Assembly: GCA_047495785.1 (NCBI GenBank)
Contig: JBLDXI010000007.1
Coordinates: forward strand, 2,294,001-2,358,000
DNA: 64,000 nt
Origin: Lepidodermella squamata
Taxonomy: Eukaryota > Animalia > Gastrotricha
Reading direction: 5' to 3'
Below the pieces are notes generated by a model. The model did no database searches, was not told where the DNA came from, and saw only the letters and a program-made list of their open reading frames with translations. Shown here piece by piece: positions 1,619-60,171 of the stretch (position 1 is the first letter of the stretch; every line of letters begins with the position of its first letter). The translations under genes were made by a program, and so were the position numbers.

Positions 1619-4600
1619 ATGAATTCAGCCGAAATAGCGTCAGCTTTCACCTCAATAAGCGAATTCAAAATAATTGAAACGTTAGGAAAAGGTGGCTTTG
1701 GTAGTGCATGGCTATGTCGACGGAAAGATGGCGATTTAGCTAACTATGTGGTTAAAGCTGTTAATCTCAACGAGATTCTAAGGAAATACCGAAATAAAGA
1801 TGGCGAAGTGGCTCTCGCATTGAAACTAATAGATCTGAGCTGCAAAGAGGTAAGGCATATACTTTCCAATTGCATAGGTATCTGATATTTTTCTTCAGCA
1901 CAAATTAATTGAGAGCTTGAAACATGATAACATCGTCGCTATCCGAGGCGCTTTTACAGGTATTATTACGCGACACACCCAATCGCTCACAACATTTTTT
2001 CTATGATAGAGTTTTGGCAACAAACGGTTGAAGGGCTAGAACACTGGAAACTGCTGGAGGATGAAATTTACTACTTGGTGATGGAGCATTGTTCAAATGG
2101 CGATTTGGAAAATTACATCAAACGGAAAAAAGAATTCCAAGCGATAATACCAGAGTGTCTCTTGCACGAATGGTCTTGCCAGTTGGTGTCCGCTGTCAAT
2201 AAGATTCACAGTCATGGCGCGATGCATCGGGACATCAAGCCTGCTAACATATTTTTGTGCATGGACGATAGGACTGTGAAACTTGGCGATTTCGGCTTAG
2301 CTAAATCCCCTGACATAGATGGCGGGTGAGTCTTTTTAGTTTCCAGGAAGCATATGAGAAAAGAAACTATTTGCCTTCGGCCAAGTTCGGCGAGCATGTT
2401 AGTTGCTTTTGGCACGAAATTGTACATGGCGCCTGAAACGTTCAGTAGCAAGAATTCAAAGGAGAGCGACTGGTGGTCGCTTGGCGTGACTTTATTCGAG
2501 CTGGCTAATTTCTACTTGCCGGTAAGCAAATCAGTCCCGCGAGCCCAATAAATAGATGTAGTTCTTTTTCAGTTTGATAATCAAGCTGATATCATCAAGT
2601 AAGTTTGAAGCATGAAAGCAGGTTAATTCTAGTTATGGATTAGATTTAGCTATGAATCGCTTTATTTGAATAGCCAAGCAAGACAAGTCGAATTAGCGGA
2701 GAGCGTCTTGAAATTGCTTATTTGCAGACAAGTGTGCGTAAAGTGAAGTACGTTCGACCCTTTAACGTAAATGCAAATTACGATCAGTAGGATCAGTGCT
2801 GGAATAAGCTGAACGCGTACTACATCATAATGTTAGGCTACTTCAAGTACTATCGAATGAGTCATCAAAGTGGTTGCTTTGGCGCTTCGCTCACACTATG
2901 TTGATTTTTTTATTTTCAGGGAAGAACCAAAATCCTTTGCCAAAGACCGGCCTTATTCAAATGAGTATCATTGCTTTGTTTTCTCGATGCTCGTTAAAGA
3001 CCCTTCCAATCGAGCTGACGCTGGTGCTCTCCTAAGCTGTCCTTTCATTAGACAAATGGAAATGACCGAAGAGCCCGCAGCTAAAGTTCGGAAGTTGGAA
3101 TTATTTTCCTCAATCCACGAGTTCAAGCGTGAAAAGGAGCTCGGAAGAGGCACCTTTGGCTCGACAATGCTATGCAGGCGATACAAAAACGTTGCCCGTT
3201 ATGTTGTCAAGGCTTACAACCAAAGTCTGATTCACCGGATTTATGACAAAGATCTTGATTTTGCAGAGCGACTAATCAATATAAGCCGAGACGAGGCAAA
3301 GCTTCATAGTTTATGAAAAATAATGCATATAAGCAGAGATGTTTTAACGTCTAGAATCTTAAACTCGTGGATTTATCACACGCAAACATCATTTCGATTT
3401 ACGGATCATTCGAGGGTGAGTCAGAGGCACTTATATCGTACTACCGCGCATCGAGTGCGTAATTCATGTCACTGTATCCCGTTCCACAATCGGGGGAATC
3501 CCAATTCAAATAATCATCTGCCACCCTAATCGAGATGACTCAAAAACGGTCAAATGCCATTTGCTATATAGCCGCATAATTCCTTCTCTTTTAATTGTTT
3601 GAAGAACATGGCTCTGCAGGTGCAATTTACTATTTGGTGATGGAATATTGTTCGGAAGGAAATTTGAATGATTACAAGAACAATTCAGCTGGGCCTATTC
3701 CCGAAAGTTTGTTGATGGATTGGTCACGACAGCTTGCTTCTGCGGTGGCCAAGCTGCACGAAAGCGGAATCCTCCATCGCGCAATAGAACCCAAGAATAT
3801 TTTTCTCAACAACGGCACTTCTGTCAAGGTTGGAGGGTTCGGGTTCGCGAAGGTTTACGAGAGGTAGGATCGATTTTGATGCAATATCCGCATGTAACAA
3901 TGATCGCAAAGAAGCAAGCAGCTACCAGTTAAAAACTTGGGACACGGTAAACAGCTTTACAAGGCTCCTGAACTATTTGCAAAGGTAGATCACTCGCACG
4001 CGAGCGACTGGTGGTCTTTGGGAGTCACTTTGTTCGAGTTGGCAAATTTCTACATGCCTGTAAGCTAATTCTCTGGGTGGAAATAATGTTTGTTAATACA
4101 AAATAATTTCAGTTTGATTCTACATTGGCTATCCTTTTGTAAGTTTCAATCGATAAGCCTTCGCGCAATTCACCCAATTACTTATAGCAATCCACTATTA
4201 CAGCAATCATCCGAAAAACTTTGATGATTCCCGTGGTTATTCGATTAAATTCCGAAACGCGATCATGGGGATGATTCGTGAAAAAACCAGCTCGAGGCGC
4301 GACTCGCCGCTAGCTTTGCTTAACGCAACGGATAATTCGTTAACAGAGGACCAAATCGCCAATCAGCTCATGAAAACAGCTTCCGATGGAAATCTTGCAA
4401 TCTCGGACCTGAGCGCGGGAGAAAAAGTAATCCACATTTTTCCTTGATCATCAATGAATTGCTATCATTTTATGTAGTTGCTTTTTCGCCTTATCAGACT
4501 GAACAAAGTCGAAGAAATCGAATCGCTTTTATCAACCACGGCTTTGAACATAAACGTTAACTGCGAGAACAGCGAAGGCGTGACCCCATTGTTTCTAGCT

Positions 4601-6979
4601 GCACAAGAAGGACATGATGAGATAGCAAAACTATTGGTAAATAGGTTCAATGCTAATCCGCTGTCTAAGGACCTATTGGGAAGAACTCCCATTTACATTG
4701 CTGCGAATAGCGGCAATTTACGTACGGTTAATATCCTTGGAACGGCTTCGAACGAAAGCATCGATGCTGCAACAAACAACGACGAAACTCCAATTTGGGC
4801 AGCAGTCAAGAATGGCCACGCTAAGGTTTTTAAATTATTAGCAGGTGCGATGAAGGCAAACGTGCAAAAGCAGGATGGGCGCAAAATGAATTTATTGCAT
4901 ATCGCAGCTGGGGAGGGTCAGGCCGAAGTGGTTCGACTTCTCGCAAACGAATACATCACAGTGAACAGTGCAATGGTGATGGGATTTACCCCTTTGCATC
5001 TCGCAGCACTGAATGGCTCCGTTGATGTTGTGAGAATGCTAGCAAACGATTTCAACAGCGACGTTAATGCCTCTGCGGAGGATGGCTGGACACCACTACA
5101 CATCGCTTCTCAAAATGGACACACCGAAGTCATCAGAATGCTTGCAGGGAAGTTCAACTGCAGCGTTGATGCCCCTGACGAGGATGGCTGGACGCCGTTG
5201 CACATAGCAGCTCAGAATGGTAACTTGGCAGTCGTTAGAATGCTTGCAGGGGAGTTCAAATGCAACGTTAACGCTTCTGTGAAGAGAGGGTGGACGCCGA
5301 TACACATCGCTGCTCAGAATGGACATGCAGAAGTCGTCAGAATGCTTGCAGAGGAGTTCAGCTGCAACGTTAATGCCTTTGAGAAAGATGGCTCGACGCC
5401 ACCGTTGCACCTCGCTGTCCTGAAGGGACAAGTGGAAGTGGTTAGGATGCTAGCAAGGGTGTTCAACTGCAACGTTAATGCGCCTGGGTTAGACGGCTCG
5501 ACGCCGTTGCACATCGCTGCTCAGGCGGGACACGCGGAAGTTATCAGACTACTGGCAGGGGAGTTCAAATGCGACGTAAATGCTTCTGTGAAGGAAGGCT
5601 GGACGCCGATACACTTCGCTGCGCAGGAGGGACATGCAGAAGTCGTCAGAATGCTTGCAGAGGAGTTCAACTGCAACATTAATACCTCAAGGCAAGATGG
5701 CTGGACGCCGATACACATCGCTGCTCAGAATGGACACACGGAAGTCGTCAGACTGCTAGCAGGGGAGTTCAGATGTGACGTTAATGCTCCTGAGGAGAAC
5801 GGCTTGACGCCGTTGCACATCGCTGCTCAGAATGGAAACACGGCAGTCGTCAGAATGCTAGCTGGGGAGTTCAGATGCAACGTTATTGCCTTGGATAACA
5901 GAGGCTGGACACCGTTGCACATTGCTGCTCAGAATGAACACCTGGAAATCGTTAGAATGCTAGCGGGGGAGTTCAACTCCGACGTTAACGCTTTTGCGAA
6001 GGATGGCTGTTCGCCGTTGCATATCGCTGCCGGGAATGGCCTTGCAGAAATCGTCAGAATTCTTGGGGGAGAGTTCAAATGCAACGTCAATGCTTCTGAT
6101 TTCGATGGCTGGACGCCGTTGCACATCGCTGTTCATCATGGTCACAGGGAGGTCGTCAGAATTCTGGCAGGGGAGTTCAAATGCGACGTTGATGCTCCTA
6201 CTGAGGATGGCTTGACGCCACTGCACATCGCTGCTCAGAATGGACACCTGGAAATTGTCAGATTGCTAGCGGGGGAGTTCAACTGCGACGTTAACGTCTT
6301 TGAGAAGGATGGCTTGTCACCGTTGCACATCGCTGCTCAGAATGGACACACGGAAGTCGTCAGACTGCTTGCAGGAGAGTTCGACTGCGGCGTTGATTTC
6401 CGAGATATCAGGGGCTGGGCGCCGATACACTTAGCTGCTCAGAACGGCCTTGCAGAAATCGTCAGAATGCTTGCAGGGGAGTTCAAGTGTGACGTCAATG
6501 CTTCAGATAAGGAGGGCTGGACGCCGTTGCATATCGCTGCTCAGAATGGCTCCGCGGAAGTCGTCAGAATGCTTGCAGGGGAGTTAAACTGCCACGTTAA
6601 TGTAGAAGATGAAGATGGAACTATGCCGTTACACGTTGCCGCTTATTGGGGCCACGCCGATATTGTGAAACTCCTAACTTCTCAATTTAAAGCAGATATC
6701 AATGCTTTGGACTATGAAACTGAAATAACAATGAAACTGGGAAATTCGTTTGATCCTCCATCTGAAAAATGGTGTTCAGTTCTCATGGGGGCATCCTTTA
6801 AAGGTCGCTATGATGTTGTTGACTTGCTCACACGTGTGCTCGGGGCCGATGTCAATTACAGAGTTCCGTCAACTGGCTGGACAGCCTTGTTCGCAGCCCA
6901 GAATTGCGATGACGATGTGTCGGATGAAGACAAACAAAAAACTGTAGACATTCTCATAGCAGCCGGTGCGATTTTGTAA
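1619..6979 (+). CDS. Multi-exon NEK-like Ser/Thr kinase + pseudokinase + about 23 ankyrin repeats
   Basis: Kinase 1 has [23 protein letters not shown] and APE. Kinase 2 has [17 protein letters not shown] and GFG. Short introns (e.g. 1850 GT, 3296 GC) join these exons in frame, and AAA|gtaatc...atgtag|TTG joins them to the ankyrin ORF 4478-6979. Confidence 0.8.
5080..6660 (+). repeat. Coding tandem array of about 15-16 near-identical 102-bp ankyrin units
   Basis: Recurring GGCTGGACGCCGTTGCACATCGCTGCTCAGAATGG...GTCAGAATGCTTGCAGGGGAGTTCAA with a 34-aa period. Confidence 0.9.
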
Positions 6980-20388: not shown

Positions 20389-20893
20389 CATTATAGGGCG
20401 ACTTTGCAGTCACATGACTAAGGTCAAAGTCCGTCTATTTTTTTCTGGTCTTGGTCGCGCGGTCGCGCAGTCGTTGTGGTCGGGCGGTCGTGTAAAAAAA
20501 TGCTCACTTAAAAATGAGAGAAAAAAACGATGCACCACCAGGAGTCGAACTAAGGATGTTGGAATAAAAAGCCATGTTTTTAATCCACTACGCCACCAAT
20601 TCATGGAAATTAAGAGTTACTATCAGTGGATCCGATTGGCAACAATATGGGTGTAAATATTTTCGCGGCCGATTTCTTCAACTGGTGGCGTAGTGGATCA
20701 AAAACATGGCTTTTTATTCCAACATCCTTAGTTCGACTCCTGGTGGTGCATCGTTTTTTTTCTCTCATTTTTAAGTGAGCATTTTTTTACACGACCGCCC
20801 GACCACAACGACTGCGCGACCGCGCGACCAAGACCAGAAAAAAATAGACGGACTTTGACCTTAGTCATGTGACTGCAAAGTCACCCTATAATG
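20389..20893. mobile_element. Foldback/palindromic element with about 210-bp near-perfect inverted arms
   Basis: 20389-20598 (CATTATAGGGCGACTTTGCAGTCACATGACTAAGG...) is the near-exact reverse complement of 20683-20893. A solo terminus also occurs at about 23970-23998. Confidence 0.9.
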
Positions 20894-33671: not shown

Positions 33672-34200
33672 ATGCTTCCGTATTGCAGGATCAAAGTCCA
33701 CGTGGTCACGTGGTATGAATAGCTAGTTCTGAGGCGTTATTTTTTTCGTTGCTTCGTCGTTTCGTCGTTTCGTCACTTCGTCATCTTATACAAAAAAAAC
33801 TTACGAAAAGAAAAAAAGGGAGCAAAAGGAGGATTTGAACTCAGAACCTTAAGGATCAGAACCATGGATTTGAGCCACTATACAATAGGAGGCTTTCTAT
33901 CTGCAACCGGCAAAAAACGCTTAAGTGCAGCGTTCGTTTAGTATATAAAAATGCCGAACGAGGATGACTACCATGACCCAGCAGTATTGCTCAGTGGTTT
34001 CGCCTTGTGCGTCAAAACCCAGTGGTCCCGGGTTCGAATCCTCCTTTTACCCCATTTTTTTTTCTTTTCTTCAGTTTTTTGTATAAGATGACGAAGTGAC
34101 GATACGACGAAACGACGAAGCAACGAAAAAAATAACGCCTCAGAACTAGCTATTCATACCACGTGACCACGTGGACTTTGATCCTGCAATACGGAAGCAT
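33672..34200. mobile_element. Palindromic non-autonomous element with about 125-bp TIRs and two internal tRNA-like segments
   Basis: ATGCTTCCGTATTGCAGGATCAAAGTCCACGTGGTCACGTGG... is inverted at both ends. The interior has TTGCTCAGTGG...GGTTCGAATCC (+, about 33981-34050) and TATAGTGG...GAGTTCAAATCC (-, about 33820-33886). Confidence 0.85.
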
Positions 34201-47138: not shown

Positions 47139-48329
47139 TTTTTCGATCACGCGAAAATCTGCTAAATACCAGACGTTTAATGTTTTCCTTTATCTTATGC
47201 TTTTTAAAATCGATTGTTTCCGCCTATAATTTTATTCGAAGCGAATATTTCTTCTTTTCTTCGGCCATGTATTATAGCAACGTACGAAAGATGGGGTCAC
47301 GTCTCGCATACATCTATATATGTAAATTTAATAATTTTTCATCATCTGTCTATCAAACGTTAGTATTTTGCTGAATAAATCGAAGTGCGAAAAGCGCAGC
47401 TTGTTTTCGACAAACGTTGTCATGGTTGATCTAATACTGCACAACAGCAAAATACACATCGCGAGGTGTACGCCGCAGCTACAATGTGTCCAAGAAATTT
47501 AGGTGAAAGTTATTCAAGTACACGCCGTTCCGCCATTTCATGGAATTTTTTCAGGTGGGTTCATTCCTTAGAGAGAGGAAATTGGCCAGATTTTTGTGAA
47601 CAATGGCCCGTTTCCATGCCTGAGCTGAAATTAGTTGTCAACACCGCACAATAGTCATAGTCAACACCGAGAAAGAGTCATTGTTAACTCATTGACTGCC
47701 AAGGCCCCGATACATCGGTTTCTCCCAGGAGAAACACTAATACCTCCACTAATATTTGAAATGTGCTGGTCCACTGTGTAAACAACGGGCGCGCATGCAT
47801 GCGCGGGGTAACAATGTAAACAGTAAACACGCAATGTGCGCTGCAGTCACGTGACGGCGTTCGCTTTGTAAAAATGAGAAATCAATCAGAGAGAAATAAT
47901 TCGAATTATCACGCCTTTTATGGCGAGAATGGTGCCTGGAATTTTCAATATAATATTTTGAGGATTCTAATTTCGGATTTTTTATTATGGCACTAACTAT
48001 TCACTATGATTTAGAAAGAGTTTTCTGCCAGTTTTGCTTTGCCGCTGTCATGTTCTCATTTTTGAAGACCGCTTCAAAGTAATAATTTTATCTGTAGACG
48101 ATGTAAAAAAACTCAGCTTACTTCAGCATGAAAGCATTTTACTTCGACAATTTCAGAGCGAAGAGCGATAGCTGATGATTTATTTCGATGAATTATTTCT
48201 AAATTGTGTTTCTTTGCTTTATTCCGAATGCAACCCGCAAATAATTTCCAAATGCTACAACAAATACAATATAAACCATAAAAACAGACAAAAATAAAGC
48301 AAGACAGAGTAGATGAACTGCTCAGAAAA

Positions 48330-48800
48330 TGACGCCTCAGAAGTCCGTGAAGAGGCGAATCCGGAGACAGGCCTTGCGAGTTCTCGGCTAGAAACATGAA
48401 AAGAGGAAGCGGCGGCGGTGCGGCGATGACGGCCGGTTCAAAAGCTGATAGCTCAACCGGAGTAATGGCAGGATAGAAGGACGTGGTCGAGAATAAACAC
48501 GACGTCGGCCTGCGGTATGGGCAACAACGCCACCAACAGCGAATAGGCAGCGCTCAGCAGCGCAGTTGTTGGGAATGAGCTTTCGAGCGGCGCAAAAAAT
48601 GACGCCGTAGGCGAGGGCGATCACAGCCAAGGTCGTGACAAAACCACCAGGCAATGTAGCAACAATTCCGACGAAATCGCCGCTCATTTTTCGGCAGCGA
48701 CCGTCGATGCTGTTGGCAATTTTATCGCGCCGATGTAGTCGCGCAGAACAAGTCGTTGTAGTAATTTTCGTTGTATTCGTCGATGATCATGACATTTCGA
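48330..48800 (-). pseudogene. Frameshifted paralogue of the membrane/AT-hook cargo gene at 51882-52514
   Basis: STNTTKITTTTCSA ~ STTTTTTTTTAWSA; DFVGIVATLPGGFVTTLAVIAL ~ DFGNVLMALAAGFGAALSMLAL; PNNCAAERCLFAVGGVVA ~ PGNGTAEQGLIAVGAVVA; after a frameshift, AVIAAPPPLPLFMFLA ~ AIVAPPPPVFVFRA. Confidence 0.75.
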
Positions 48801-48850
48801 GCAGTACTGCAAATCTGGCAGTAACCGGGCGTTCGGAATCAATAGTTGAT

Positions 48851-51431
48851 TTATCGCTTGTTGAACACATTCATCTGGTGCCATTTGTTGAAGCAGGTGT
48901 TCATGTGAAAAGCAGGATGAGAACCGTCCTCTTTCGGTTGGCAAGCCAGGCACCAATGTGAAACCCTGCCGCCGCAGTTCATACAAGGGCGCTCTTTTTT
49001 ACCAGGCATTTTGGTAAGGTCATGAATCTCGGCTTTTGAGCTGCTGCTGGAAGAATCGTTGCTTTTTGATGAATCGAAGGACTCAGAACTCGCCACTGAG
49101 CCATCCTCTCCGATCATTCCGATCAGAGCTCTAATGACTGCTAAGCGAAATTCAAGAAGCGACATCCGAGAGGTATTTCCGCTTTGCAACTTGAAGAATT
49201 GATGGGCAGCAATCATGCCGCTCTCAAGAATCCTGAAGAAAATTTTTCGATACCATTTATACGACTTCCTATTTGCATCATAGTACGCGGCCTGAAAAAA
49301 TGTGAAAAGATAAAATATTTACGAATAGCTCAAATATGTTTGCTCACATTTTGATCGTGACAATCCACCGCATTCATTGATTTATTGTATTGATCGACAA
49401 TGAGAGGTTTCATGACAGTCTTGATCCTTTTAGCCGGTGGCTCGCCCATACGCGGTGCCGCATCGTCATCGTCGTCGAGTTTGCGCTTCAGGCCGGTTTC
49501 AGACTCAACATCCTCCTCCTCTCCATCTTCGCTATCGCCCTCTGAATCCGAAGCTAGGAAGTACTTGGACATGGCAGAATCGTTGTCGCCGCTATCATCG
49601 CCGTCAAATTCGGCTTCTGAATCCACTTCCACTCCGGTAGAATCTGCCTCAATCTCTTGATATACCGAACTTTGCCCTGTTTGCGTTTCATTGTGCTCGA
49701 TGACCCGTTGAATTCGAGCCGGAAGGGTAATCGGAATCATTTCTGGGGCAAACTCAGTCGATAGCATAAGTACTTCGCGATTGTCCTTCCACTTGAGTAC
49801 ATTGATATCGTCTTGTCTTCGGCAAATTATTTCACCTGTCTTCAAGCTAGCTTGAACCACTTCGGGCGGGTTTCCGACACGGTTTTTTTTCAGTGTTCCG
49901 GTTAGGTGAGTTAGATTAGCCAATAGGTATTTAGCGAGTTCGACGGAAGTGTAAAAATTGTCGACAAAAAGCGAGTGTCCCTTGCCAAGAAGGTATTTGA
50001 TGAGTGATTTCACGACTGAAAATGTGTGGCCTTTGCCAGAAATAATATCATCTTGAACATTATCCGCGCCTGAGTAGACATGGAAGCGAAGAGGGATTCC
50101 AGTTGATGACTCACATAGCATATAGATCTGTAAAATAGCAGATTGAAAACCAAGGTTTTCACACTAGTCTCTAGTCTCACTAGATCGAACCTTCGAAATT
50201 TAAAATTTTAGCTTCGAAATTAAAATTGTGGCTTCAAAAAGTAAAATCCTAGCTTCGAAATTAAAACTGTGGCTTCAAAATGTAAAATCCTAGCTTCGAA
50301 ATTAAAATTTTAGCTTCGAAAAGTAAAATCCTAGCTTCGAAATTAAAATTATGGCTTCGAAAGTAAAATATTGGCAAGAGTTCTATTCCGATAGAATCCG
50401 AGATTTGGGTATTATAATTTTCAAGAATATCACTTCACGCATATACGGATTTTTTTGTTATTTTTCTGAGCCGTTATTCTGCTCCAGAATTCCAGAAATA
50501 ACGGCTACTTATTCTATGTCTTTTATAGCCAAAATATAAGTCGTAAAATGACAGCAAAGCTGAAAGTAAAGGGAGTAAAGGAAGTAAAGGAAAGGTTCTC
50601 CAGATATTTTGATATTTTCGAATTTTTTCATTTTTTTATTTTCATTGCCTAGCGTTTTGATGAAAAATTAAAGAAAAACGGTTTTATGATTTTTGTGGGG
50701 TTCTGTCTCAAGTAAAACATGGCCATAAATTGTCTCAAAAATGCCGCTTTAAAATTAAAATTGCATTCCGATTTTGATATATATATATTTCATTTTATAG
50801 AACCTTTGACCTATCTTACCTTTATACCGAACTTCGCCTTTTTCGCCTTGTTGTACGACTTGAATGCCAGCCTTCCCTTGAAAAGCACTTGAGATTCATC
50901 GATTGCCAGATTTTTGCCAGGTGAATAAAGGTCATTCATCCGATTTTGATAGAAGTTTAGAACAGGTCTGATTTTATAGAGGCGATCGGTTTTGATGTTT
51001 TGCGCCAGAAATTGGTTGTTGTTGAAATGAAGATTTGACAAAATCGCTTCAAATCGATTTCGAGACATCGTCAAATTGAATATCGGTGTTGCCATCAGTT
51101 TGTCCTCCGTCCAGTAGCTTGCGATTGTTGGCTTTCGAATCACTCCCATTAGCAGCCATAAACCGAAAAATCGCTCAAGCTCCGGAACTGTCAATGGCAC
51201 CCAGTCGTTGATTCTGGCGTTGGGTTTAAGCCCAATTTGACGTAATTTTTGATTGGCATATCTATTCGTTTCCTTGCATACCATTTCGAGAAACTCGATG
51301 GTGAAAATTAGCCGGAAAAAGCTAACTGGTGACAATCGACCGCAATCAGGCTGGATTTTAAGTTTTTGGGTTCCGGTGAACGGAAAAGATAGAGGAGGTT
51401 CATCAGAATTGATCCACTCGCTGGCATCCAT
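48851..51431 (-). CDS. piggyBac (PGBD4-like) transposase, 3 exons (51431-50820, 50127-49348, 49291-48851), about 610 aa, apparently intact
   Basis: MSRNRFEAILSNLHF, DRLYKIRP, IDES, KFGIK|IYMLCES, VDNFYTS, WKDNREV, YNKSMNAVDCHDQN|AAYY, KWYRKIFF and a C-terminal Cys/His domain. Both introns are GT-AG and phase 0. Confidence 0.95.
50191..50370. repeat. Minisatellite (about 20-21-bp unit GCTTCGAAATTAAAATTTTA) in transposase intron 1
   Basis: About nine degenerate tandem copies. Confidence 0.85.
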
Positions 51432-51881
51432 GAAATTAGAGACAAAAATCTGAAATCTTTAATTCGAAGTTTGAAAATTCTAAATTGTGTGCCTTTCAGT
51501 GCTAAAGCCCGGGCCGTCAGGAATTCACCGCTTCACCGCACGCGGAAGCATATGTAAACAAAACTGCGTGGTCGAAAAACAAACAAATCCGGAGGCGAGT
51601 TCCTGCAAGATACCGCACCGCGCTATAGGTGAAAATTTCAGGATAATTCCCGGATCAAACAAAAGTGGAACAAAACACAAGACCGAAAATCCGCCAATTA
51701 ATTATTTTATTGCATCATTGCAAAGTCAGAAAAGCCAGAAGCGAAATACAACAATACAATACAAAACGAGTCATCAATCAACAACAATACAAAATTCGCA
51801 ATACTGAGAACTGAGAATACAAAAAACAGCGATAGAAAAATTGTCAGTAATTTACGAAATGTTCAACAGGTAAACAGCAGC

Positions 51882-52514
51882 TCACGCGCGCCTTGGACGG
51901 CCGCGGCCGCGACGAGGCGCCACCGGAGCTGGCGCAACAGGTGGCGCTGCCGGAACGGGCGCTCGAAACACGAAAACAGGAGGCGGCGGTGCGACGATTG
52001 CGGGAATGGCGGCAGGCTGAATGGTGGCTTCGATCGGAGGCGGTGGCAGAATCGGAGGAAGATTCGGCAGAATCGGCCCGGCTCGAGACAGAACAGCCGG
52101 CGGAGGAGGTCGAGCAGGTACCTGCCGCTGAGCAACAACAGCGCCAACTGCGATTAGGCCTTGTTCTGCAGTGCCGTTGCCTGGCTTGTAGGGCACAGGG
52201 TATCTGCGGCGAAAGCAGCACCACCAGATGAAGAAAATAAAAACAGAACACGTCAGCGCTAACATCGACAATGCCGCCCCAAAACCGGCCGCCAACGCCA
52301 TGAGCACATTGCCGAAGTCGGGAGTAGCCGGGGTCGTTGTAGTCGCACTTGTCGCAGTTGTCGGCAATGTCGCCGTCGAAGTACCAGGCGCAGACCAAGC
52401 GGTTGTTGTCGTCGTTGTCGTTGTTGTGGATAGAGCAAGCAAACCCGGCCGCGCTGAACGGGTGACGATGCCGTATCCTGGCTGATAATAAATATCGAAG
52501 TCAAAAGTCGACAT
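51882..52514 (-). CDS. Transposon cargo: single-pass membrane protein with Thr-rich N-terminus, Pro-rich tail and terminal AT-hook
   Basis: 210 aa: poly-Thr region, hydrophobic VLMALAAGFGAALSMLALTCSVFIFFIWW, CCFRRRY, Pro/Ala-rich tail and C-terminal PRRGRGRPRRA. Confidence 0.7.
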   Translation of the reverse strand: MSTFDFDIYYQPGYGIVTRSARPGLLALSTTTTTTTTTAWSAPGTSTATLPTTATSATTTTPATPDFGNVLMALAAGFGAALSMLALTCSVFIFFIWWCCFRRRYPVPYKPGNGTAEQGLIAVGAVVAQRQVPARPPPPAVLSRAGPILPNLPPILPPPPIEATIQPAAIPAIVAPPPPVFVFRAPVPAAPPVAPAPVAPRRGRGRPRRA

Positions 52515-52599
52515 TATTCAGAAATTTGTTAGCTCGAATTTACTTATTTTTATTTTCTTTCCTCCTTTTGTAGTCACCTTTCAACCGTTTTACTGTATC

Positions 52600-52860
52600 A
52601 TTACGTCGGCGTCGTCACAGCCGACCGCGGTCTCGCTGTCTGCCAAAACAGCCGAGCGGCTCCAAGGGCATGTTAACCGGCCGCGACGCCCACCGGCGCC
52701 GTTTCAAAGTCTGTAATTACTGACCGCGCACTACAACCGCCCGCCTCGCCACAGGTGCGCGCGCGCGCTTTCTCCACAGGTGCGCGCCCGGTGCGCGCCC
52801 GGTGCGTAATCACACGCTCGAGTGAGGATCACGTATTTTATGTCAACGGCGTGGGACTAG
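52600..52860. promoter_or_regulatory. GC-rich putative bidirectional promoter between divergent cargo genes
   Basis: CpG-rich island with repeated CCACAGGTGCGCGC and CCGGTGCG motifs between ATG 52514 (-) and ATG 53001 (+). Confidence 0.45.
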
Positions 52861-53000
52861 AAAGGAATTAAATTGAAATGAAAATATTTGCCAAAGCCAT
52901 TTCCGGATACCTGATGAGCCGTTCAAGCAATATATAGCCAGCTCCAAAAAGTCACCAGTCACCAGATAAATTTTTCAAACAGAATTTCCGTCATTTTGTA

Positions 53001-53951
53001 ATGAAAGGCTTTTTTCATGTATTTTTTGCGGCGGCGCTTATTATGCCTGCGTGCTGCTTGGAAATAACTGAAATATCGCCAACTCAGGTCATTTCAGGTC
53101 GATACTATTATGACCAGCTGAAAGCTCAGAACAATTCTTGTGTCGATAGATGGCTTGAACACGCGAAAAAGTTGTGCGCAAACTCAGTGATGTCGTGGCA
53201 AAATGTCGCCGAGTCAGCTCTCAAATGCTATCTGTCGGCCAAAAACTCTACAAAAGCTATAAATTGTCCTATGACACAGCCTACAGAATTCGCCAGCCAA
53301 ATTAATTGCTTGAAAAATTCTCTCGAAGTTTTAGACTGGCTCACTTACATGATTTTCGTTGGCGAAATTCGCGAAATATGTAGCTATTTTTTATTTTTCA
53401 AGGAAGAAAATTCTCCTCTCTACATACTCGCTAGACACTTTGTTCAGGCAGTAGTTGATTGCTTTCCAATTGAAGGCCCCGTGATTGATTTTTTCTCATA
53501 TTTCAAAGAGTCGACGCTTTTCGTCGCTGTTACTTCTCAAGTCTTTTACAACTCTTCGCTTGAACAGTCTTTCTTGAGGTATCGAGTCTCATTCTACATA
53601 TTTCACAGTGTTTTCCTGACATTATTTCGACGAAAAAAATTCCTAATATCTTTGTATCTTGTTGCCTTCGCCGAGTTCGCTCTCCAAATTTTTCTCAAAT
53701 CAAAAAGTGGGTTTGAATGGCGATATTTTCTTGGAGAGTATCTATTGATTATTTTGCTTCGCTGGCTATTCATCATCCATTTCTTGATTTTTGGAGAAAT
53801 ATGGTCGCCTGTTCATAATTTATGGAAAAGGCTTAGCCATTGCTGGGACTACAGTTCAACTTATCTCTGCAAACTAGGACGCGATCTAACCCCGCGAAAA
53901 ACTGATGTTGCATCTGTCAAAACAAGGTCGAAAAAGAAATCCGAGGATTGA
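53001..53951 (+). CDS. Transposon cargo: Kar5/GEX1/Brambleberry-like membrane protein (signal peptide, 6-Cys domain, 2-3 C-terminal TMs)
   Basis: CVDRWLEHAKKLC...QNVAESALKCYL...NC...NCLKNSLEVLDWLTYMIFVGEIREICSYF matches by eye the Cys spacing and the W/F-x-x-Y...IC end of the family's cysteine-rich domain. Hydrophobic segments and a basic tail follow. Confidence 0.65.
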   Translation: MKGFFHVFFAAALIMPACCLEITEISPTQVISGRYYYDQLKAQNNSCVDRWLEHAKKLCANSVMSWQNVAESALKCYLSAKNSTKAINCPMTQPTEFASQINCLKNSLEVLDWLTYMIFVGEIREICSYFLFFKEENSPLYILARHFVQAVVDCFPIEGPVIDFFSYFKESTLFVAVTSQVFYNSSLEQSFLRYRVSFYIFHSVFLTLFRRKKFLISLYLVAFAEFALQIFLKSKSGFEWRYFLGEYLLIILLRWLFIIHFLIFGEIWSPVHNLWKRLSHCWDYSSTYLCKLGRDLTPRKTDVASVKTRSKKKSED

Positions 53952-54324
53952 TCTGAACCTTTTCGATTTTTTCTATGCCGGAAGGAAATTTTTTAATTTG
54001 TTGCGCTACTTTGGGAATTTCGACATAAAATTTGTGAAAAATTTGCAAAATTGGGATAACTTGAAAATAATTGACCCTTCAGTATTTTACGGTAGCGAGA
54101 AACAATTTCCTTTCGGCAGCAGCCTTTTTCTTCAACTCGTCCGTCTCATTCATTCGCGACGATGTTTTTTACATTTTGATTATTGGCTTTGCCTGAATTT
54201 CGTTCATTTCATTTATTCATTGAAGGCTAAATTTGAGTACCTCTTTTCAATAATTGCTGATTGTATCGTTTAGCTCCAGTAAAACAAAGTCTGATGCTGT
54301 ACTATTTTGTTTTTTATTTTAGGA

Positions 54325-55096
54325 ATGCAAGTATTTACGAATTTAGTTTCTACTGTGGTCGAGAGGCATCGCCTAGCTGTTCGGGAGACAAACCGAGAAT
54401 TCTATGGAACCAGCCGATTTGAAGAGAGCGGTTCAACGGCCGATGTAAGTCGCTTGAAAAATTAGATCCGTCAGCATTTTCGTATTTTTTCCACATTCGT
54501 AGAGCGATTCTCGAATTGGCGTGTATGACTTCGGCAGCGAGTCGGAATCGATCTCCGTCTCAAGCTCTTCAACGCCATTGCAACAAAGCACCACGTCGGC
54601 TTTAGCGCCGCCAACAGCTGTATCCGCAATTCTACCGTTCAAAGACGCAGCGTCTAAAATTACGCCGCTTCGACAGGTTCATCGGCTCGTTTTTCGGCGT
54701 GACGCGCGTCAATCGGAAACAAATGAAAATCACTCCCACGCTCAATGGATCGCAAGAAGTTTCGCCGACCTGCCTGGTGATAATGACACAAATAGCATGA
54801 TATTGTTAGGTTCGCATGTGCTGGAGCAAGAAATCATAAAATCGGCTTATGAAATGCATAAAGATAAACCTTGTTTGTTTGCGAAAAGAATTTTGAAAGA
54901 ATGTGAAAGTCGGTCCCGGCAATTTAGCAATGCGTCAGTTTGGAATGATGCGGATTTGATTGACGATGTAACAAAACTTGTAATGCAAAAATACGATCAT
55001 TTTTTCCTAATTCGACGTGCTATTTGCCAAAATTTCGCAGAGTGTAATCGTAAAAAGAAAGCATACGAGTCGAAGAAAAAATCGGCGAAAAATTAG
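54325..55096 (+). CDS. Transposon cargo: putative BEN-domain DNA-binding protein, 2 exons (54325-54444, 54503-55096), about 237 aa
   Basis: In-frame gtaagt...cgtag intron; Ser-rich N-terminal part; C-terminal PCLFAKRIL...SV..DADLIDDVTKLVMQKY...IRRAICQNFAECNRKKK resembles the BEN helices; Lys-rich NLS-like tail. Confidence 0.55.
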
Positions 55097-55696
55097 CAAT
55101 TTGTGCTTTGTGCGTGGTGATCAGTTTTTTGTTCTTGTTGCTTGAAATAAATGTTTTTGTTCCAATGATTTTTGATAACTCCTGAATTATTTTCACCTGA
55201 ATTTTCACTACTTGGCGGTTTGCGCAAATAATAACGTTTCGAAAACAGGCTTCAAGTTTGATTTACGCATTCAACAGCGAGGGCGAAGACCGCGTCTTTG
55301 TTTACTGGTCGCACTTGAGAGTCACCCAAGGCGCGCCCGATTTGTTTGCATAACAGCTAACAGCGGCGATAAACGCGCATGTTTTGTTTATTTTAAACCT
55401 TGAACAAACATAACACAAAACGCGAAATCGCTATTCCAGCATCTCGCTAGGTGAAAGTTGGGTTTCTCCGGGGAGAAAAACTCACGTGAGAAAAAAATCT
55501 CCGGGAGAAAACTCTGGCAGTGAAAGAGTTAAGGAACAGTCATCTTTATTACACATTCTGCCTCGATGTTTTCAGTTATTCTGCAGTTGTCCAGAGTTGT
55601 GTAATTGTATATAAGCGAAAGAAAATTAAGAAAATCATGAGAGATTCAACGACATTTGCAATAGCTATAACAAAAACCACAACGGCGACAAACAAA

Positions 55697-58600
55697 TCAC
55701 AACAAAAATTCGGAGCAAACAACAGCATTAGCAGCTCGCATTTCGAAGCAAGAGAAGTCGTTGCACAGCTTCTTGAACTCCCTGAGTGTCTCGTTAAACT
55801 TGTTCCGTTTAGCCACATCAAGCGCCATCTTGAACTGCTCGACGTGATCTTCGATTTCGTCACACTTTGCGAGATATTTAAATACTGAAGCGAGATTCTT
55901 TTCAGCTGCAACGACCAGAGCGGACTTGCCATTCCTCGCCGACCATTTGACAGGTTCATTTGAGTATTTTTGAAACATCATCAAGGTAACAACTCGTTGC
56001 CGCTCTGAAATCGACCCGCTAAGTGTCTGGAACCAAGCGTCATAGACGTTGTAGGAATTGATGAACTTTTTGGCCAATTCACTTCGCCCAAATCTAGCTG
56101 CCAGCATCAGTGGATTGAACTGCACTTCATCGTCGAAATCGAGCCTGATGGTGGCGTTAACATCAGCATCATTTTTGAGCAGCACTTCGAAAAACTCGAC
56201 GTCAAAGTCGCTCATCACCGCAAAGTTGAGGCAATCCATTCGCAAGAGCCCAGACTCGACAATTTTAACCACGCTGACATTCGGATTGGCGCCTCTCTTC
56301 AGTAGAAGCTTGAAGTTATCCAACTTCTTACAGGCCAAAGCTCGGAATAACGCGGATTGGTTGCTGAACACACCGGTATCGCAAGCTTCTGCAGCTTTGG
56401 CATCTTGCCAATTGACGTTGTAGCCTTGAGCCAGCACTTTTTCAAGCGTTTCAGCGCCGTTTTCGAGCCCGGCCGCTTCGATAAGTTCGCGCTGTTTAAC
56501 AACGACATTTGCAGAGGGTTCGCAGGATCCGGCTGGTTCCCACCTCCCGAAGCCGAACGGGCAGTCGAGTTTTTCCGAACCGACCAAAGAGAACCCGTTG
56601 TAGCACTTGAGAAGCGGCTCGATGTGGTCGCCAGCGACGTAGCCGTTTTCGATGTTGGACGGGTGTCCATAGCACGGTTTCACTTGTCGGCATAGTTCGC
56701 CGCCCAAAACCCGGTAACCGACCGATTCGCATAGAGATTTAAAGAATGCTGATCCAAATGATTTAACGTCTTGTGCAATGTAGTTCGGGTTGATCTTGCC
56801 GAACTCAGCAGCGATTTTGAAGCTGTCCTGTTCGAGTTTGTGCGGGTCTACTCTAGTTGTCGGCGATTCGATAGTTGAAACGTCGGTCTCAGGGTTCTGG
56901 TTTTCGAATTCAATTCGGTTCGATGCGGTTGTAGTTGTTGACGTAGTAGATGAGTCGCATTCAGTTTTCAAGCAGGCGTTTGATAGATCAATTGACCACG
57001 AACCGCTTTGCAAGCATTCAGCCACTACGCTTTCGAGCTCAAAATCTGAACAGATCACTTTGACTTTCTGGCGAGTGAGAAAGGTTTTCCGATCGTTGGC
57101 TGGTGGCCATGTTAATATTCCAGGCTTTTGAGGCGCCACAAAGACTTCGCCTCCGGTAACTAACGGCAAGTCGCATGCCTGAAGTCAAAATGTAGGAATC
57201 AATGATTACGTTGATCAAGAAAATCAAGATTTTTAAAGGGTCTTACTTTTAGCGGAACCAAATTTGCCTGTTACCGGAACCAAATTTTGGAATTTTCAAT
57301 GGGTGGTTTTCTCGAAGCGGTTTTGTCGATGTTAAGACCAAACTGGGTATAGACCTGGTTTCATGTAGACCAAATCAAATTAGCATTTGGTTTTAGGATT
57401 GTCCACGAATTTTTGTCGATTGTTCTTTTGGTACATTCAATTGTTATGAAACACAGACGTTGGGACAAACGGCTAAAATAGCTGTTAATCCGGCGATGGA
57501 TGGCTTTCTTTAAAACCAAGTTTTAAATTTTAAAACCGAACTGTTTCAAACCCCCCGTTAAAACCGCCTGTTCAGCCCCAATTTACCCATGAGCTGTAGA
57601 CCCGCACCCTACCGGGTCTACACATTTGGAGTTTATTTTCTAGAAAAATCTGGTTTCAGCTTCTCATGAACGAGACAACTGAAACCCGAGTTCTAAAAGT
57701 GATATTTAGAACCCAAGAATAGCCCCGCGTGAATACGGACCAGTTCGACAGTTTGCATAGATGAAGTAACGAGTACTCTATACCGATACAAGACTAAGGA
57801 CAGGATCTAACATCGGCTAAATGGCGATGAAACTTTACGCATTAGCGAAAAACAAACTTCATGAAAAACTCTGAAACCACCTCTTCCGATGAGCGTAATT
57901 TAAGATGGATGATTAATTTGCATATTCCAATATTTTATTCATCCGCGTTATTACATGGAAATGCACATGAATATTTTCAGCAGGATTTTTTTGAGGGGAT
58001 TTCCTGCCTGGGTGTAAAAATAGAAAATAGTTGACCAATTATTCATCAAAAGGAGCCGATTTGAATATCTGAATATTTCTCATATGAAACGATTAGTGCA
58101 TTTTGCGGATTCATATTGAGTACCTTTCGTTTTCATTGGCTAATAAATTCACCATCTCGCTAATTTTACCTATCAATAATTTTCGCTATCAAGAAATGTT
58201 ACCCTATTTTTCTGAAAATAATTTATTTAGTACTTGCGCTACAACCTGCATTCTGCATTCACATTTCAAAATGTTAAATTTAAGGTAGATAAGTGATCAA
58301 CTTCAGGCTGAGATTAATGTGGCATTACTATATCCAAATTCTGGGATCGTAAAATAATGCCGATTTCACAGCCGAAGTCATTCGACTCGAAATAAGCAAA
58401 TGAACTGTGGTTACCTGAAAATCTAAGGTAACCCGGCCGATTTCACGTGTAAAATGCGCGAAAAAATTGTGGCAATTTAAATGGAATGAAGCAATAAATC
58501 ATCATGTTAGTTTCTGCCAGATGGTTCATATATTCGAGTCAAAGAAATGCGGCCATGTTAAATCCTTGGTTAAATCACGTGTCAGACAAGCTACCCAATT

Positions 58601-60171
58601 TCGTCAAGGTCGCTGCTACCTCCAAGAAATCGGTATTGATTTTATCTGTTTTGGACGGTGTTTTGATTTAGAGGAATCTCCGGGTATACATCAATTTAGT
58701 ATGGCAGTCATTTTCCCGGCCAGGTGGTTAGATAAAGGGGTAATAATTTGGAAAATCATGGCTTTCATGAAAAAATCGCCGAGAACTTTTAATTAACTTC
58801 GAAATGATCGCATTATTGAACTACAGACAGCCGGAAATTCATTTAATATTGACCTGCCAATTTTTCATTTTTGGCAAAGGGCTCGGGTTAGCCGAGGAGA
58901 AAATGTTCCCCAGCATCACAGTTAACCAGGCTGTACCGCCCATTTTTCGAAGAGCAGGAATCCCTAAATTTGGTCGCTGCGGCTTAACTTCGGCCACTGG
59001 CCGAAATTCGGACACTAAGTGCTGTGCAGCAAAAAAAAATTCTAAATTCAGGCGAGGGGGCCATGTCGCTTCTCGAGTGCTTTGTACCATAAACACCCGA
59101 ATTTCAGGCATCATGTCGTCAAGGATAAGCTCTCAGGTAAAGCAACAAAGGCCATTTCCACGTTAGGCGAATTACCGAGGCGAATTTAACGGTATCAAAC
59201 TTAAGGTATTAGTGTAACTGGATGAGGTGGCCGAAATTAGGGCACCCGGTTCCCTATTCCAACAATTCCACATTTTCCAACATATTCTAATTTCAAAGTT
59301 AATTTCCAAATTTTTCGTAATTTTAACGTGATTGTTACGCAACCTAATTAGTCTAATAAAGTCTACAGTTAATCCCCGATCAGAAACTGAACTCGTTTTA
59401 TATACGCAAGAATAAGCTCTTGGTCTTGTTCAGACCGAAAATGTTTTTGGTTTGGTCTTATAAAACTTGGTTTTAATGTAAACTGCTTCGAGAATACCAC
59501 CCAATGTGCCTGAAACCACTTTTCGAACCTTTTCAGGATGACATGATTGATCAGCCAAATTCCAAATAAATCATCTTTAAATTCAGCCTGAAATTCTGTG
59601 TAAGACGCGTTCATCGCTATAGAATTCAGACATTGCCCCAATTTCGTAGAAATATTCGAAAAGTGACCTTTTTCTCATCTAAAATTATGTTCCGCAACAG
59701 GCAAATTCGGTTCCGCTAAAAGATATTCTGATTTTTAAATAGGTTTGATAACAAGGTTTGATTTTTCATTAAAATTACCTTAGAAACCTCGAAATATAGC
59801 ATTTTTTCAAAATAAATAATAACAAAAATACTGTTGGAATTCAAACAACTCGATATCAAAAGAATTCGAAGCAAAAATAAAAAAAACCAACAGTTGCTCC
59901 CAAATTTTCCCAATGGATTCAAAGCATGTTTCTTTGAAGTATGTTGCAATTGGGAATCCAGGACATTTGAAATGATGTTTGGGGTGCCGTCAAGGACGAA
60001 TGTTGGTAATTATTGGGAAAAAAAATTTATTTCGACTAAAATTTTAATTTTAAATTTTAAACATTTTTAAAGGCTGGTAATATTTTTAAGAAATTTCAAA
60101 CTCACTTGAAAGCTTGGCTGGCTGCAAATAACAACAACGCCAAGCAAGGAGAAGACAATTTTCGAAAACAT
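55697..60171 (-). CDS. Putative secreted sushi(CCP)x2 + ankyrin-repeat protein, 2 exons (60171-60106, 57178-55697)
   Basis: Exon 1 MFSKIVFSLLGVVVICSQPSFQ|gtgagt joins in phase 0 to ttcag|ACDLPLV. CCP motifs (ECLQSGSWS, IENG...CYNGFSLVGS...C...GRW...C) are followed by ANK motifs (KLLLKRGANPN, LLKNDADVN, NPLMLAARFG, GKSALVVAAE). The exon 1 link is inferred. Confidence 0.65.
58420..58560 (-). mobile_element. Degenerate internal fragment of the 10367-10857 MITE family
   Basis: TAGTTTCTGCCAGATGGTTCAT is the reverse complement of ATGAACCATCTGGCAGAAACTA at about 10410; GGTAACCCGGCCGATTT mirrors AAATCGGCCAAGTTACC. Confidence 0.65.

Follow-up and report, generated by a model that had tools for sequence, protein, structure and literature searches.

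We examined a 64-kb stretch of a genome assembly of the gastrotrich Lepidodermella squamata (contig JBLDXI010000007.1, positions 2,294,001 to 2,358,000; hereafter the window, to which all coordinates refer), focusing on an open reading frame (ORF) of 210 codons on the minus strand at 51882-52514 (ORF210). It lies within a putative piggyBac-like element of about 7.8 kb (47688-55528). We put at about even the chance that ORF210 is a real, or recently real, coding cargo or accessory gene of this TTAA-flanked transposon, albeit an orphan. Hydropathy and structure modelling suggest, as the best reading of its product, a small, mucin-like bitopic membrane protein whose cytoplasmic tail is disordered and rich in proline. 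The stronger evidence for coding is a three-base periodicity and the presence of a paralogue within the element, rather than the openness of the frame. An earlier note on this DNA, made from its letters without database searches, had described ORF210 as a membrane protein carrying a terminal AT-hook inside a transposon, had proposed that it links AT-rich DNA to a membrane, possibly the inner nuclear membrane, and had drawn an analogy with the FAST cell-fusion proteins of reoviruses.

Reading frame and layout of ORF210

ORF210 runs from ATG to TGA and encodes 210 amino acids followed by the stop. The ATG stands two codons past an in-frame stop codon, right where the open stretch begins. An AATAAA (51706-51711) lies 171 nt past the ORF210 stop and delimits a probable 3' untranslated region (51705-51881, minus strand). 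A reading of ORF210 as a 5' exon belonging to the transposase gene of the element was rejected, given that ORF210 has its own stop and AATAAA and lies 450 nt from the transposase ATG.

In the N-terminal part (residues 1-66), 22 residues are Thr, and nine of these are consecutive (residues 30-38; 52401-52427) and written in mixed synonymous codons. No signal-peptide-like segment appears at the N-terminus in 19-residue hydropathy windows, and the sole region above 1.4 in such windows spans residues 67-103. A transmembrane helix is predicted at residues 67-101 (52212-52316). Around its end, WWCCFRRR occupies residues 97-104, with the cysteine pair at 99-100 and the arginine triplet at 102-104, so that a CC-F-RRR motif lies next to the membrane (residues 99-104; 52203-52220). 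It is followed by a Pro/Ala-rich tail of 95 residues that is predicted to be disordered (residues 105-199; 51918-52202); the last 106 residues of the protein contain 30 Pro, 19 Ala, and three PPPP runs. The C-terminal 11 residues (200-210; 51885-51917) form an Arg/Gly/Pro cluster with RGRP, in which GRP takes positions 205-207 with Arg on both sides, and which holds three overlapping R-x-R triplets.

Modelling of the single sequence with AlphaFold2 gave a helix at residues 67-104 with a predicted local distance difference test (pLDDT) score of 79-93. A weak helix was modelled at residues 116-128, and nothing beyond 67-104 is confident; the aromatic-rich residues 4-17, for instance, were modelled as a hairpin at low confidence. 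The layout given in the earlier note therefore stands: the lack of a cleavable signal peptide, the Thr-rich N-terminus, the long hydrophobic segment, the CC-F-RRR motif, and the Pro-rich spacer (put at roughly 90 residues) ahead of a terminal RGRP were all located. Its placing of the tail on the cytosolic or nucleoplasmic side, by the positive-inside rule, agrees with the basic residues found C-terminal of the predicted helix, and ORF210 looks like a single-pass membrane protein.

Base composition and coding periodicity

ORF210 occupies a patch with a guanine-plus-cytosine (GC) content of 56-68%, compared with about 40% nearby, and stop codons are few in this patch because it is GC-rich. The other five reading frames of ORF210 contain 3, 1, 4, 6, and 6 stops. 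Shuffling of the sequence with its dinucleotides preserved left the given frame open in 1.3% of trials, and 5% of trials had an open frame among the six. Because stops are scarce and shuffled sequences are open at these rates, the openness of ORF210 by itself is only weak evidence that it codes.

The composition of the three codon positions is more informative. ORF210 shows a three-base periodicity (chi-square 52, p=1.5e-9 for base composition across codon positions) that is comparable in strength with that of a transposase exon, and periodicity is absent from both the adjacent upstream GC-rich stretch, which is not an ORF (p=0.23), and the downstream spacer (p=0.77). The GC content of the tail is 84%, 66%, and 49% at codon positions 1, 2, and 3, respectively; because it is so unequal across positions, the GC richness of the tail stems from the encoded amino acids rather than from DNA that is uniformly rich in GC. 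All four synonymous codons are used for each of Pro, Ala, and Thr, and ORF210 is thus not a plain trinucleotide repeat. Its Pro codon preference resembles that of the host and transposase genes.

A decayed second copy of the gene

A second copy of the ORF210 gene, which starts with the Thr run, extends into the 3' flank, and is now decayed, lies at 48209-48774 on the minus strand. It adjoins the transposase gene on its downstream side and on the same strand, ORF210 being on the other side. In this copy, a 99-aa ORF (48388-48687) keeps the membrane core. A tblastn search of the window with ORF210 returned, besides ORF210 itself, only 48427-48684 (E=3.7e-4). Residues 65-138 of ORF210 align with residues 3-70 of the 99-aa ORF at a score of 83, whereas 2000 shuffles that preserved composition gave 29 +/- 4.9 and never exceeded 60; this is also the best score among the 36 frame pairs of the two copies, the runner-up reaching 57. 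At the DNA level, bases 90-608 of ORF210 align locally with 48774-48345 at a score of 128, above the maxima obtained with triplet shuffles (45) and with 262 other tiles of the window (46), and weak similarity is seen between the 3' flanks (51817-51705 and 48327-48209). Together, the protein, DNA, and flank alignments indicate a duplication of the gene that took in the Thr run and all that follows, up to approximately the poly(A) signal.

Three indels fall within the membrane core, and the two copies nevertheless remain in frame. The short second hydrophobic helix of the ORF210 tail (residues 116-128) is kept in the second copy. The reading frame chosen in the earlier note, for which conservation among copies had been proposed as a check, is the one best conserved through the helix and this short hydrophobic helix. 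Other parts of the second copy have deteriorated. The first part of ORF210 is lost as coding sequence, and similarity to the tail runs on in a different frame, which implies at least one frameshift. Aligned as DNA, the copies show 28 gaps, of which 19 are not multiples of three by a count that depends on the alignment.

Searches for relatives of the protein

Compared with Pfam, ORF210 gave nothing at E<=0.01, and at E<=10 only sub-threshold matches of a compositional type, to the sialomucin family PF05283 and to a domain of unknown function (DUF), over the part that comprises the Thr run and the helix. The PF05283 match scored 12.5 bits against a cut-off of 28.5 and is thus below the curated threshold. 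No match was obtained in a PDB sequence search with the whole of ORF210 and with its last 30 residues, and no relative was found in a word-indexed search of 5.8 billion proteins or in a translated scan of metagenome contigs. A full HMMER search of 1.84 billion representatives returned a single match, a protein of 248 aa (P0012; E=8.8e-4), which we rejected as a relative since composition-adjusted BLASTP was not significant. ORF210 shares with this protein and with the CD164/MGC-24 sialomucins (PF05283) a Ser/Thr-rich stalk, one helix, and basic juxtamembrane residues. On the other hand, it has no signal peptide and its tail is different, and the matches are weak and driven by composition. By sequence comparison, the ORF210 protein belongs to no family.

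Coding gene or chance reading frame

Over the membrane core, the 63 in-frame aligned codons of the two copies differ by 0.41, 0.32, and 0.59 at the first, second, and third positions (proportions of nonsynonymous and synonymous differences, pN and pS, of 0.37 and 0.63), in a codon alignment that was guided by the protein and is thus biased toward apparent constraint. As read from these two sequences, the per-position differences are a coding signature and the apparent trace of purifying selection.

The bias of that alignment is one of several points that weigh against ORF210 as a gene. The whole DNA-guided alignment shows a small third-position excess (0.257, 0.257, and 0.355). ORF210 lies in a GC-rich patch with more than one partly open frame, an open frame among the six is expected by chance at about 5%, and synonymous codon usage fails to separate its frames. 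The second copy is decayed and shifted in frame over the tail, so that at least that copy is not maintained, and only one copy of the element is seen. Among the called genes of the assembly collection, none has exactly the ORF210 product; a neighbouring 846-aa host ORF is likewise missing, and the collection apparently lacks the source genome. Finally, because no relative was found in any search, ORF210 is without independent conservation.

These observations may be explained if ORF210 is not functional and stays open by chance, either as a GC-rich repeat within the transposon or as the remnant of a captured fragment that once coded; its membrane-protein look would then result from Pro, Ala, Thr, Gly, and Arg codons translated beside one hydrophobic stretch. 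Such an origin fits an ORF that is an orphan in every search, with no such gene on record, and it fits the few stops in the alternative frames, the 5% figure for openness, the decay of the sister copy, and the uninformative codon usage. It accounts poorly for the periodicity, which is strong and specific to ORF210, for the frame-specific conservation of the membrane core with its excess of third-position differences, and for an ATG that opens the stretch and a poly(A) signal that follows it. We consider a non-functional frame unlikely, if far from negligible, and favour a coding gene carried by the transposon.

The putative transposon and its transposase

There are 676 pairs of TTAA sites that bracket the transposase gene, and the pair at 47684 and 55529 is the sole one with an inverted match of at least 12 of 16 bases (12/16, with 12/14 in the first 14). 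The left TTAA (47684-47687), a putative target-site duplication with the right TTAA (55529-55532), is followed by a 14-nt terminal inverted repeat (47688-47701, plus strand) whose counterpart lies at 55515-55528 on the minus strand. In addition, the palindrome TTCTCCCNGGAGAA has two sites in the whole 64 kb, both subterminal, at 47720-47733 and 55464-55477, 36 and 65 nt inside the ends of the element. Based on the TTAA-flanked inverted repeats and this end-only palindrome, the element was set at 47688-55528. With TTAA at its limits (47684 and 55532), the element bears out the placement of ORF210 inside a transposon in the earlier note. Alternative ends in the vicinity of 47790 and 52790 were rejected, there being no terminal repeat at these positions.

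A piggyBac-type transposase gene, in three open pieces (51431-50811, 50121-49330, and 49216-48851), extends over 48851-51431 on the minus strand, downstream of ORF210 and on the same strand. The first two pieces match the Pfam domain DDE_Tnp_1_7 at E=5e-46 and 1e-25, the former covering profile positions 1-158 and the latter 160-280, which are contiguous over the first gap. Each of the two gaps opens with GT and closes with AG, the adjoining bases are consensus-like, and the gaps are read on this basis as two putative introns. No stop or frameshift was found inside the transposase pieces. The presumed first intron is AT-rich and contains a tandem repeat with a 41-nt period and about 4.5 units (50191-50374).

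Relatives of the N-terminal piece of the transposase were found in a word search at 32-51% identity only, and a scan of metagenome contigs revealed no further copy of the element. The nearest transposase relatives, at just 37-46% identity, have no ORF like ORF210. The contigs of two transposase relatives (L001 and L002) contain no ORF comparable to ORF210; a 209-aa ORF upstream in L001 was rejected as a counterpart, being an acidic stretch unrelated to ORF210.

The arrangement of two related genes on either side of a transposase could also be explained without a cargo-bearing element. ORF210 and its decayed copy would be host paralogues in tandem, separated by a resident transposase gene that derives from piggyBac and may have been domesticated; the repeats that end at 47688 and 55528 would be coincidental, or the frame that they define would be a composite that includes host genes. 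The two canonical-looking introns of the transposase speak for this, introns being frequent in domesticated transposase copies. So does the chance expectation for a TTAA-anchored pair of this quality, which at 0.03-0.05 is the measure of the 12/14 terminal repeat taken alone. The first terminal bases of the element differ from those that we take to be typical of piggyBac termini, and no second copy of the element occurs within the 64-kb window. What tells against tandem host paralogues is the presence of TTAA on both sides, the restriction of the TTCTCCCNGGAGAA sites to just inside the two ends, and the confinement of exact copies of a second short sequence, CGGGCGCGCA, to the element. We regard the host-paralogue explanation as decidedly improbable.

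The ten-base CGGGCGCGCA is exact at 47786, 52781, and 52792 and has one mismatch at 55330. Two of the exact copies belong to GC-rich direct repeats upstream of ORF210 (52740-52810, minus strand) and the third, the only other one in the 64 kb, is near the left end of the element, while the near-copy at 55330 is near the right end. These copies could be candidate binding sites or the trace of an internal end.

A model for the membrane protein

If ORF210 is the coding cargo gene that we favour, its long helix would insert as a reverse signal anchor, and the unfolded Thr-rich end of about 66 residues would be translocated and probably O-glycosylated. The cysteine pair and Arg triplet would lie at the cytosolic face, where the cysteines may be palmitoylated, and the disordered proline-rich tail would offer PxxP and PPPP docking sites. 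The gene was duplicated within the element, and the copy across the transposase has decayed. In the simplest view, ORF210 would be captured or de novo cargo without a role in transposition.

Resemblance to FAST proteins

FAST proteins are about 100-200 residues long, have an ectodomain-transmembrane-endodomain order, and lack a signal peptide (PMC12945298). Their features include hydrophobic patches, a polybasic motif, polyproline, and either a palmitoylated cysteine pair or N-terminal myristoylation, and the FAST groups share little sequence (PMC12945298). With 210 residues, one hydrophobic span, and a basic C-terminal side, ORF210 has this layout in its predicted topology, and the cysteine pair (99-100) and a polybasic triplet (102-104) are present. 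The likeness to the FAST proteins of orthoreoviruses and aquareoviruses extends to the bitopic form, the missing signal peptide, the polyproline, and the similar size.

The differences concern sequence and setting. No named match was found in Pfam, PDB, or two protein searches, which is a weak test of FAST membership given that the members share little sequence. There is no Gly after the initiator Met of ORF210 and so no myristoylation site. FAST proteins may have a hydrophobic patch or fusion loop in the ectodomain instead; in that part of ORF210, the aromatic-rich residues 4-17 were modelled as a hairpin, at low confidence. The ORF210 ectodomain of about 66 residues is long and is mostly a Thr-rich stalk; FAST ectodomains are shorter. 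ORF210 is set in a DNA transposon of a metazoan genome and is not the gene of a fusogenic virus.

Could ORF210, as cargo of a DNA transposon, then encode a membrane-fusion protein of the FAST kind? Held against the published list of features (PMC12945298), it is small and bitopic, without a signal peptide, and has the cysteine pair, the polybasic and polyproline motifs, and a hydrophobic patch in the endodomain. Motifs of these kinds are, however, found in many bitopic proteins, comparisons of sequence, with profiles, and with PDB gave no match, the N-terminal Gly is missing, and the context is not that of a virus of this group. We consider a fusion protein exceedingly improbable. As the motifs are common in bitopic proteins generally, the FAST likeness is kept as one of layout only; the analogy made in the earlier note thus holds for the arrangement of the protein and finds no counterpart in sequence, profile, or PDB comparisons.

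The terminal RGRP and the DNA-tether proposal

The core of the AT-hook (PF02178), Gly-Arg-Pro with basic flanks, is present in ORF210 at residues 205-207. The AT_hook profile gave no match at E<=10 with the whole of ORF210 or with its last 30 residues, in a test limited by the shortness of the motif and by the HMMER filters, which drop weak matches. No AT-hook protein in PDB matches the ORF210 tail. The Arg-Gly-Arg-Gly of the ORF210 end is encoded by a doublet of the hexamer CGCGGC in a CpG-rich stretch. By an estimate from residue frequencies, RGRP is expected by chance in about 1% of sequences of the ORF210 composition, a figure uncorrected for the many ORFs and motifs scanned. In the corresponding stretch of the second copy, no frame contains GRP. 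The motif is therefore lost in the only other copy, where its retention had been proposed as a check of the AT-hook, and this loss is weak evidence since that copy is decayed. Compared with AT-hook proteins of the HMGA type (PF02178), ORF210 has the Arg-flanked RGRP core, but in one copy only and at the end of a membrane protein.

A working AT-hook would allow the protein to tether AT-rich DNA to a membrane, for example the inner nuclear membrane. The proposal draws on an RGRP with Arg on both sides at the very C-terminus, on its chance of about 1%, and on the basic residues after the helix, which would place the tail on the cytoplasmic or nucleoplasmic side; furthermore, a protein with a tail this small could reach the inner nuclear membrane by diffusion. 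It is opposed by the negative AT_hook and PDB comparisons, by the dependence on a single four-residue motif that a hexamer doublet encodes, by the lack of this motif in the second copy, and by the absence from ORF210 of any other nuclear or chromatin feature. The AT-hook assignment of the earlier note is not sustained by a four-residue match that neither a profile nor PDB nor the second copy backs, and the DNA-to-membrane tether built on it is left unsupported. We give a functional tether only the slightest of chances. Most likely, the terminal RGRP is not a DNA hook but a basic low-complexity end made by the CGCGGC doublet. R-x-R triplets in the cytosolic tails of membrane proteins are Arg-based retention/retrieval signals of the endoplasmic reticulum, and if the RGRP end of ORF210 is active, a sorting signal of this RXR type would be a more ordinary role.

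A broader proposal, covering both functions, is that a piggyBac transposon acquired, duplicated, and kept under selection a membrane-active bitopic protein, either FAST-like or a DNA-contacting tether at the nuclear envelope. We hold this to be very unlikely; if true, a cut-and-paste DNA transposon would promote its own spread or targeting by means of a membrane protein that it encodes.

Other features of the element and the window

Two further orphan ORFs are found inside the element on the plus strand, and neither has a match in Pfam, PDB, or the protein searches. ORF316 (53001-53951) is divergent from ORF210 over a GC-rich spacer of 490 nt and has a hydrophobic N-terminus and two later hydrophobic spans; its AlphaFold2 model has a mean pLDDT of 44. 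ORF191 (54521-55096) has a Ser-rich start.

The domains of neighbouring host ORFs (ANF_receptor, Trypsin plus Sushi, Neur_chan_LBD, and ankyrin) identify the host as a metazoan. Rfam and tRNA scans of the 64-kb window were empty. An 833-aa ORF on the plus strand (4478-6979) consists almost entirely of ankyrin repeats, with at least 13 tandem units of 102 nt at 71-78% identity. Between 24400 and 47100, a multi-exon gene of about 5-7.7 kb occurs four times in tandem, in copies that have diverged to 60-87% identity, and one segment of it apparently encodes an EGF-like Cys motif; the last copy stops about 650 nt short of the left end of the transposon.

Other repeats in the window also resemble mobile elements. 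Two long near-perfect hairpins (20389-20893 and 33672-34200) have arms of 139 and 126 nt with 99% complementarity and are probably small foldback elements or elements similar to miniature inverted-repeat transposable elements (MITEs); short repeats beside them are common to 19.9-20.1 kb and 35.0-35.2 kb. A 42-nt inverted repeat (57246-57287 and 59681-59722; 81% complementary) brackets 2.4 kb past the ankyrin/Sushi ORF, and the stretch within it may be another mobile element.

The observed/expected ratio of CpG is 1.16 for the whole window and 1.25-1.5 in the element, that is, there is no CpG depletion, and long uninterrupted host ORFs are common (846 aa and 833 aa). Together, the absence of CpG depletion and the long ORFs suggest a compact metazoan genome that is weakly methylated or unmethylated.

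Relation to known elements and significance

The element has the hallmarks of the piggyBac superfamily, namely a DDE_Tnp_1_7 transposase, TTAA on both sides, and short terminal inverted repeats. Familiar piggyBac elements are 2-3 kb long and have a single gene; to our knowledge, they normally carry the transposase and nothing else. The present element differs in its size of about 7.8 kb, in at least three extra orphan ORFs, in an internal duplication, and in a transposase that is apparently split by two introns. It is thus of a known kind, but unusually large, with orphan ORFs and an internal gene duplication.

The reviewed precedent for a cargo-bearing piggyBac element is the far larger Teratorn, a piggyBac-herpesvirus fusion element of teleosts that measures 41-182 kb (PMC6431247). 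Both are piggyBac-type elements with genes beyond the transposase. Whereas Teratorn has recognisable herpesvirus genes, the element described here has about 4 kb of orphan ORFs with no family match.

Should other copies confirm ORF210, the element would be an unusual case in which a DNA transposon includes a gene for a membrane protein, either accessory or captured. Otherwise, it would be a neat illustration of how an orphan ORF may arise or decay within a mobile element, and also a caution against deriving a function from a four-residue motif.

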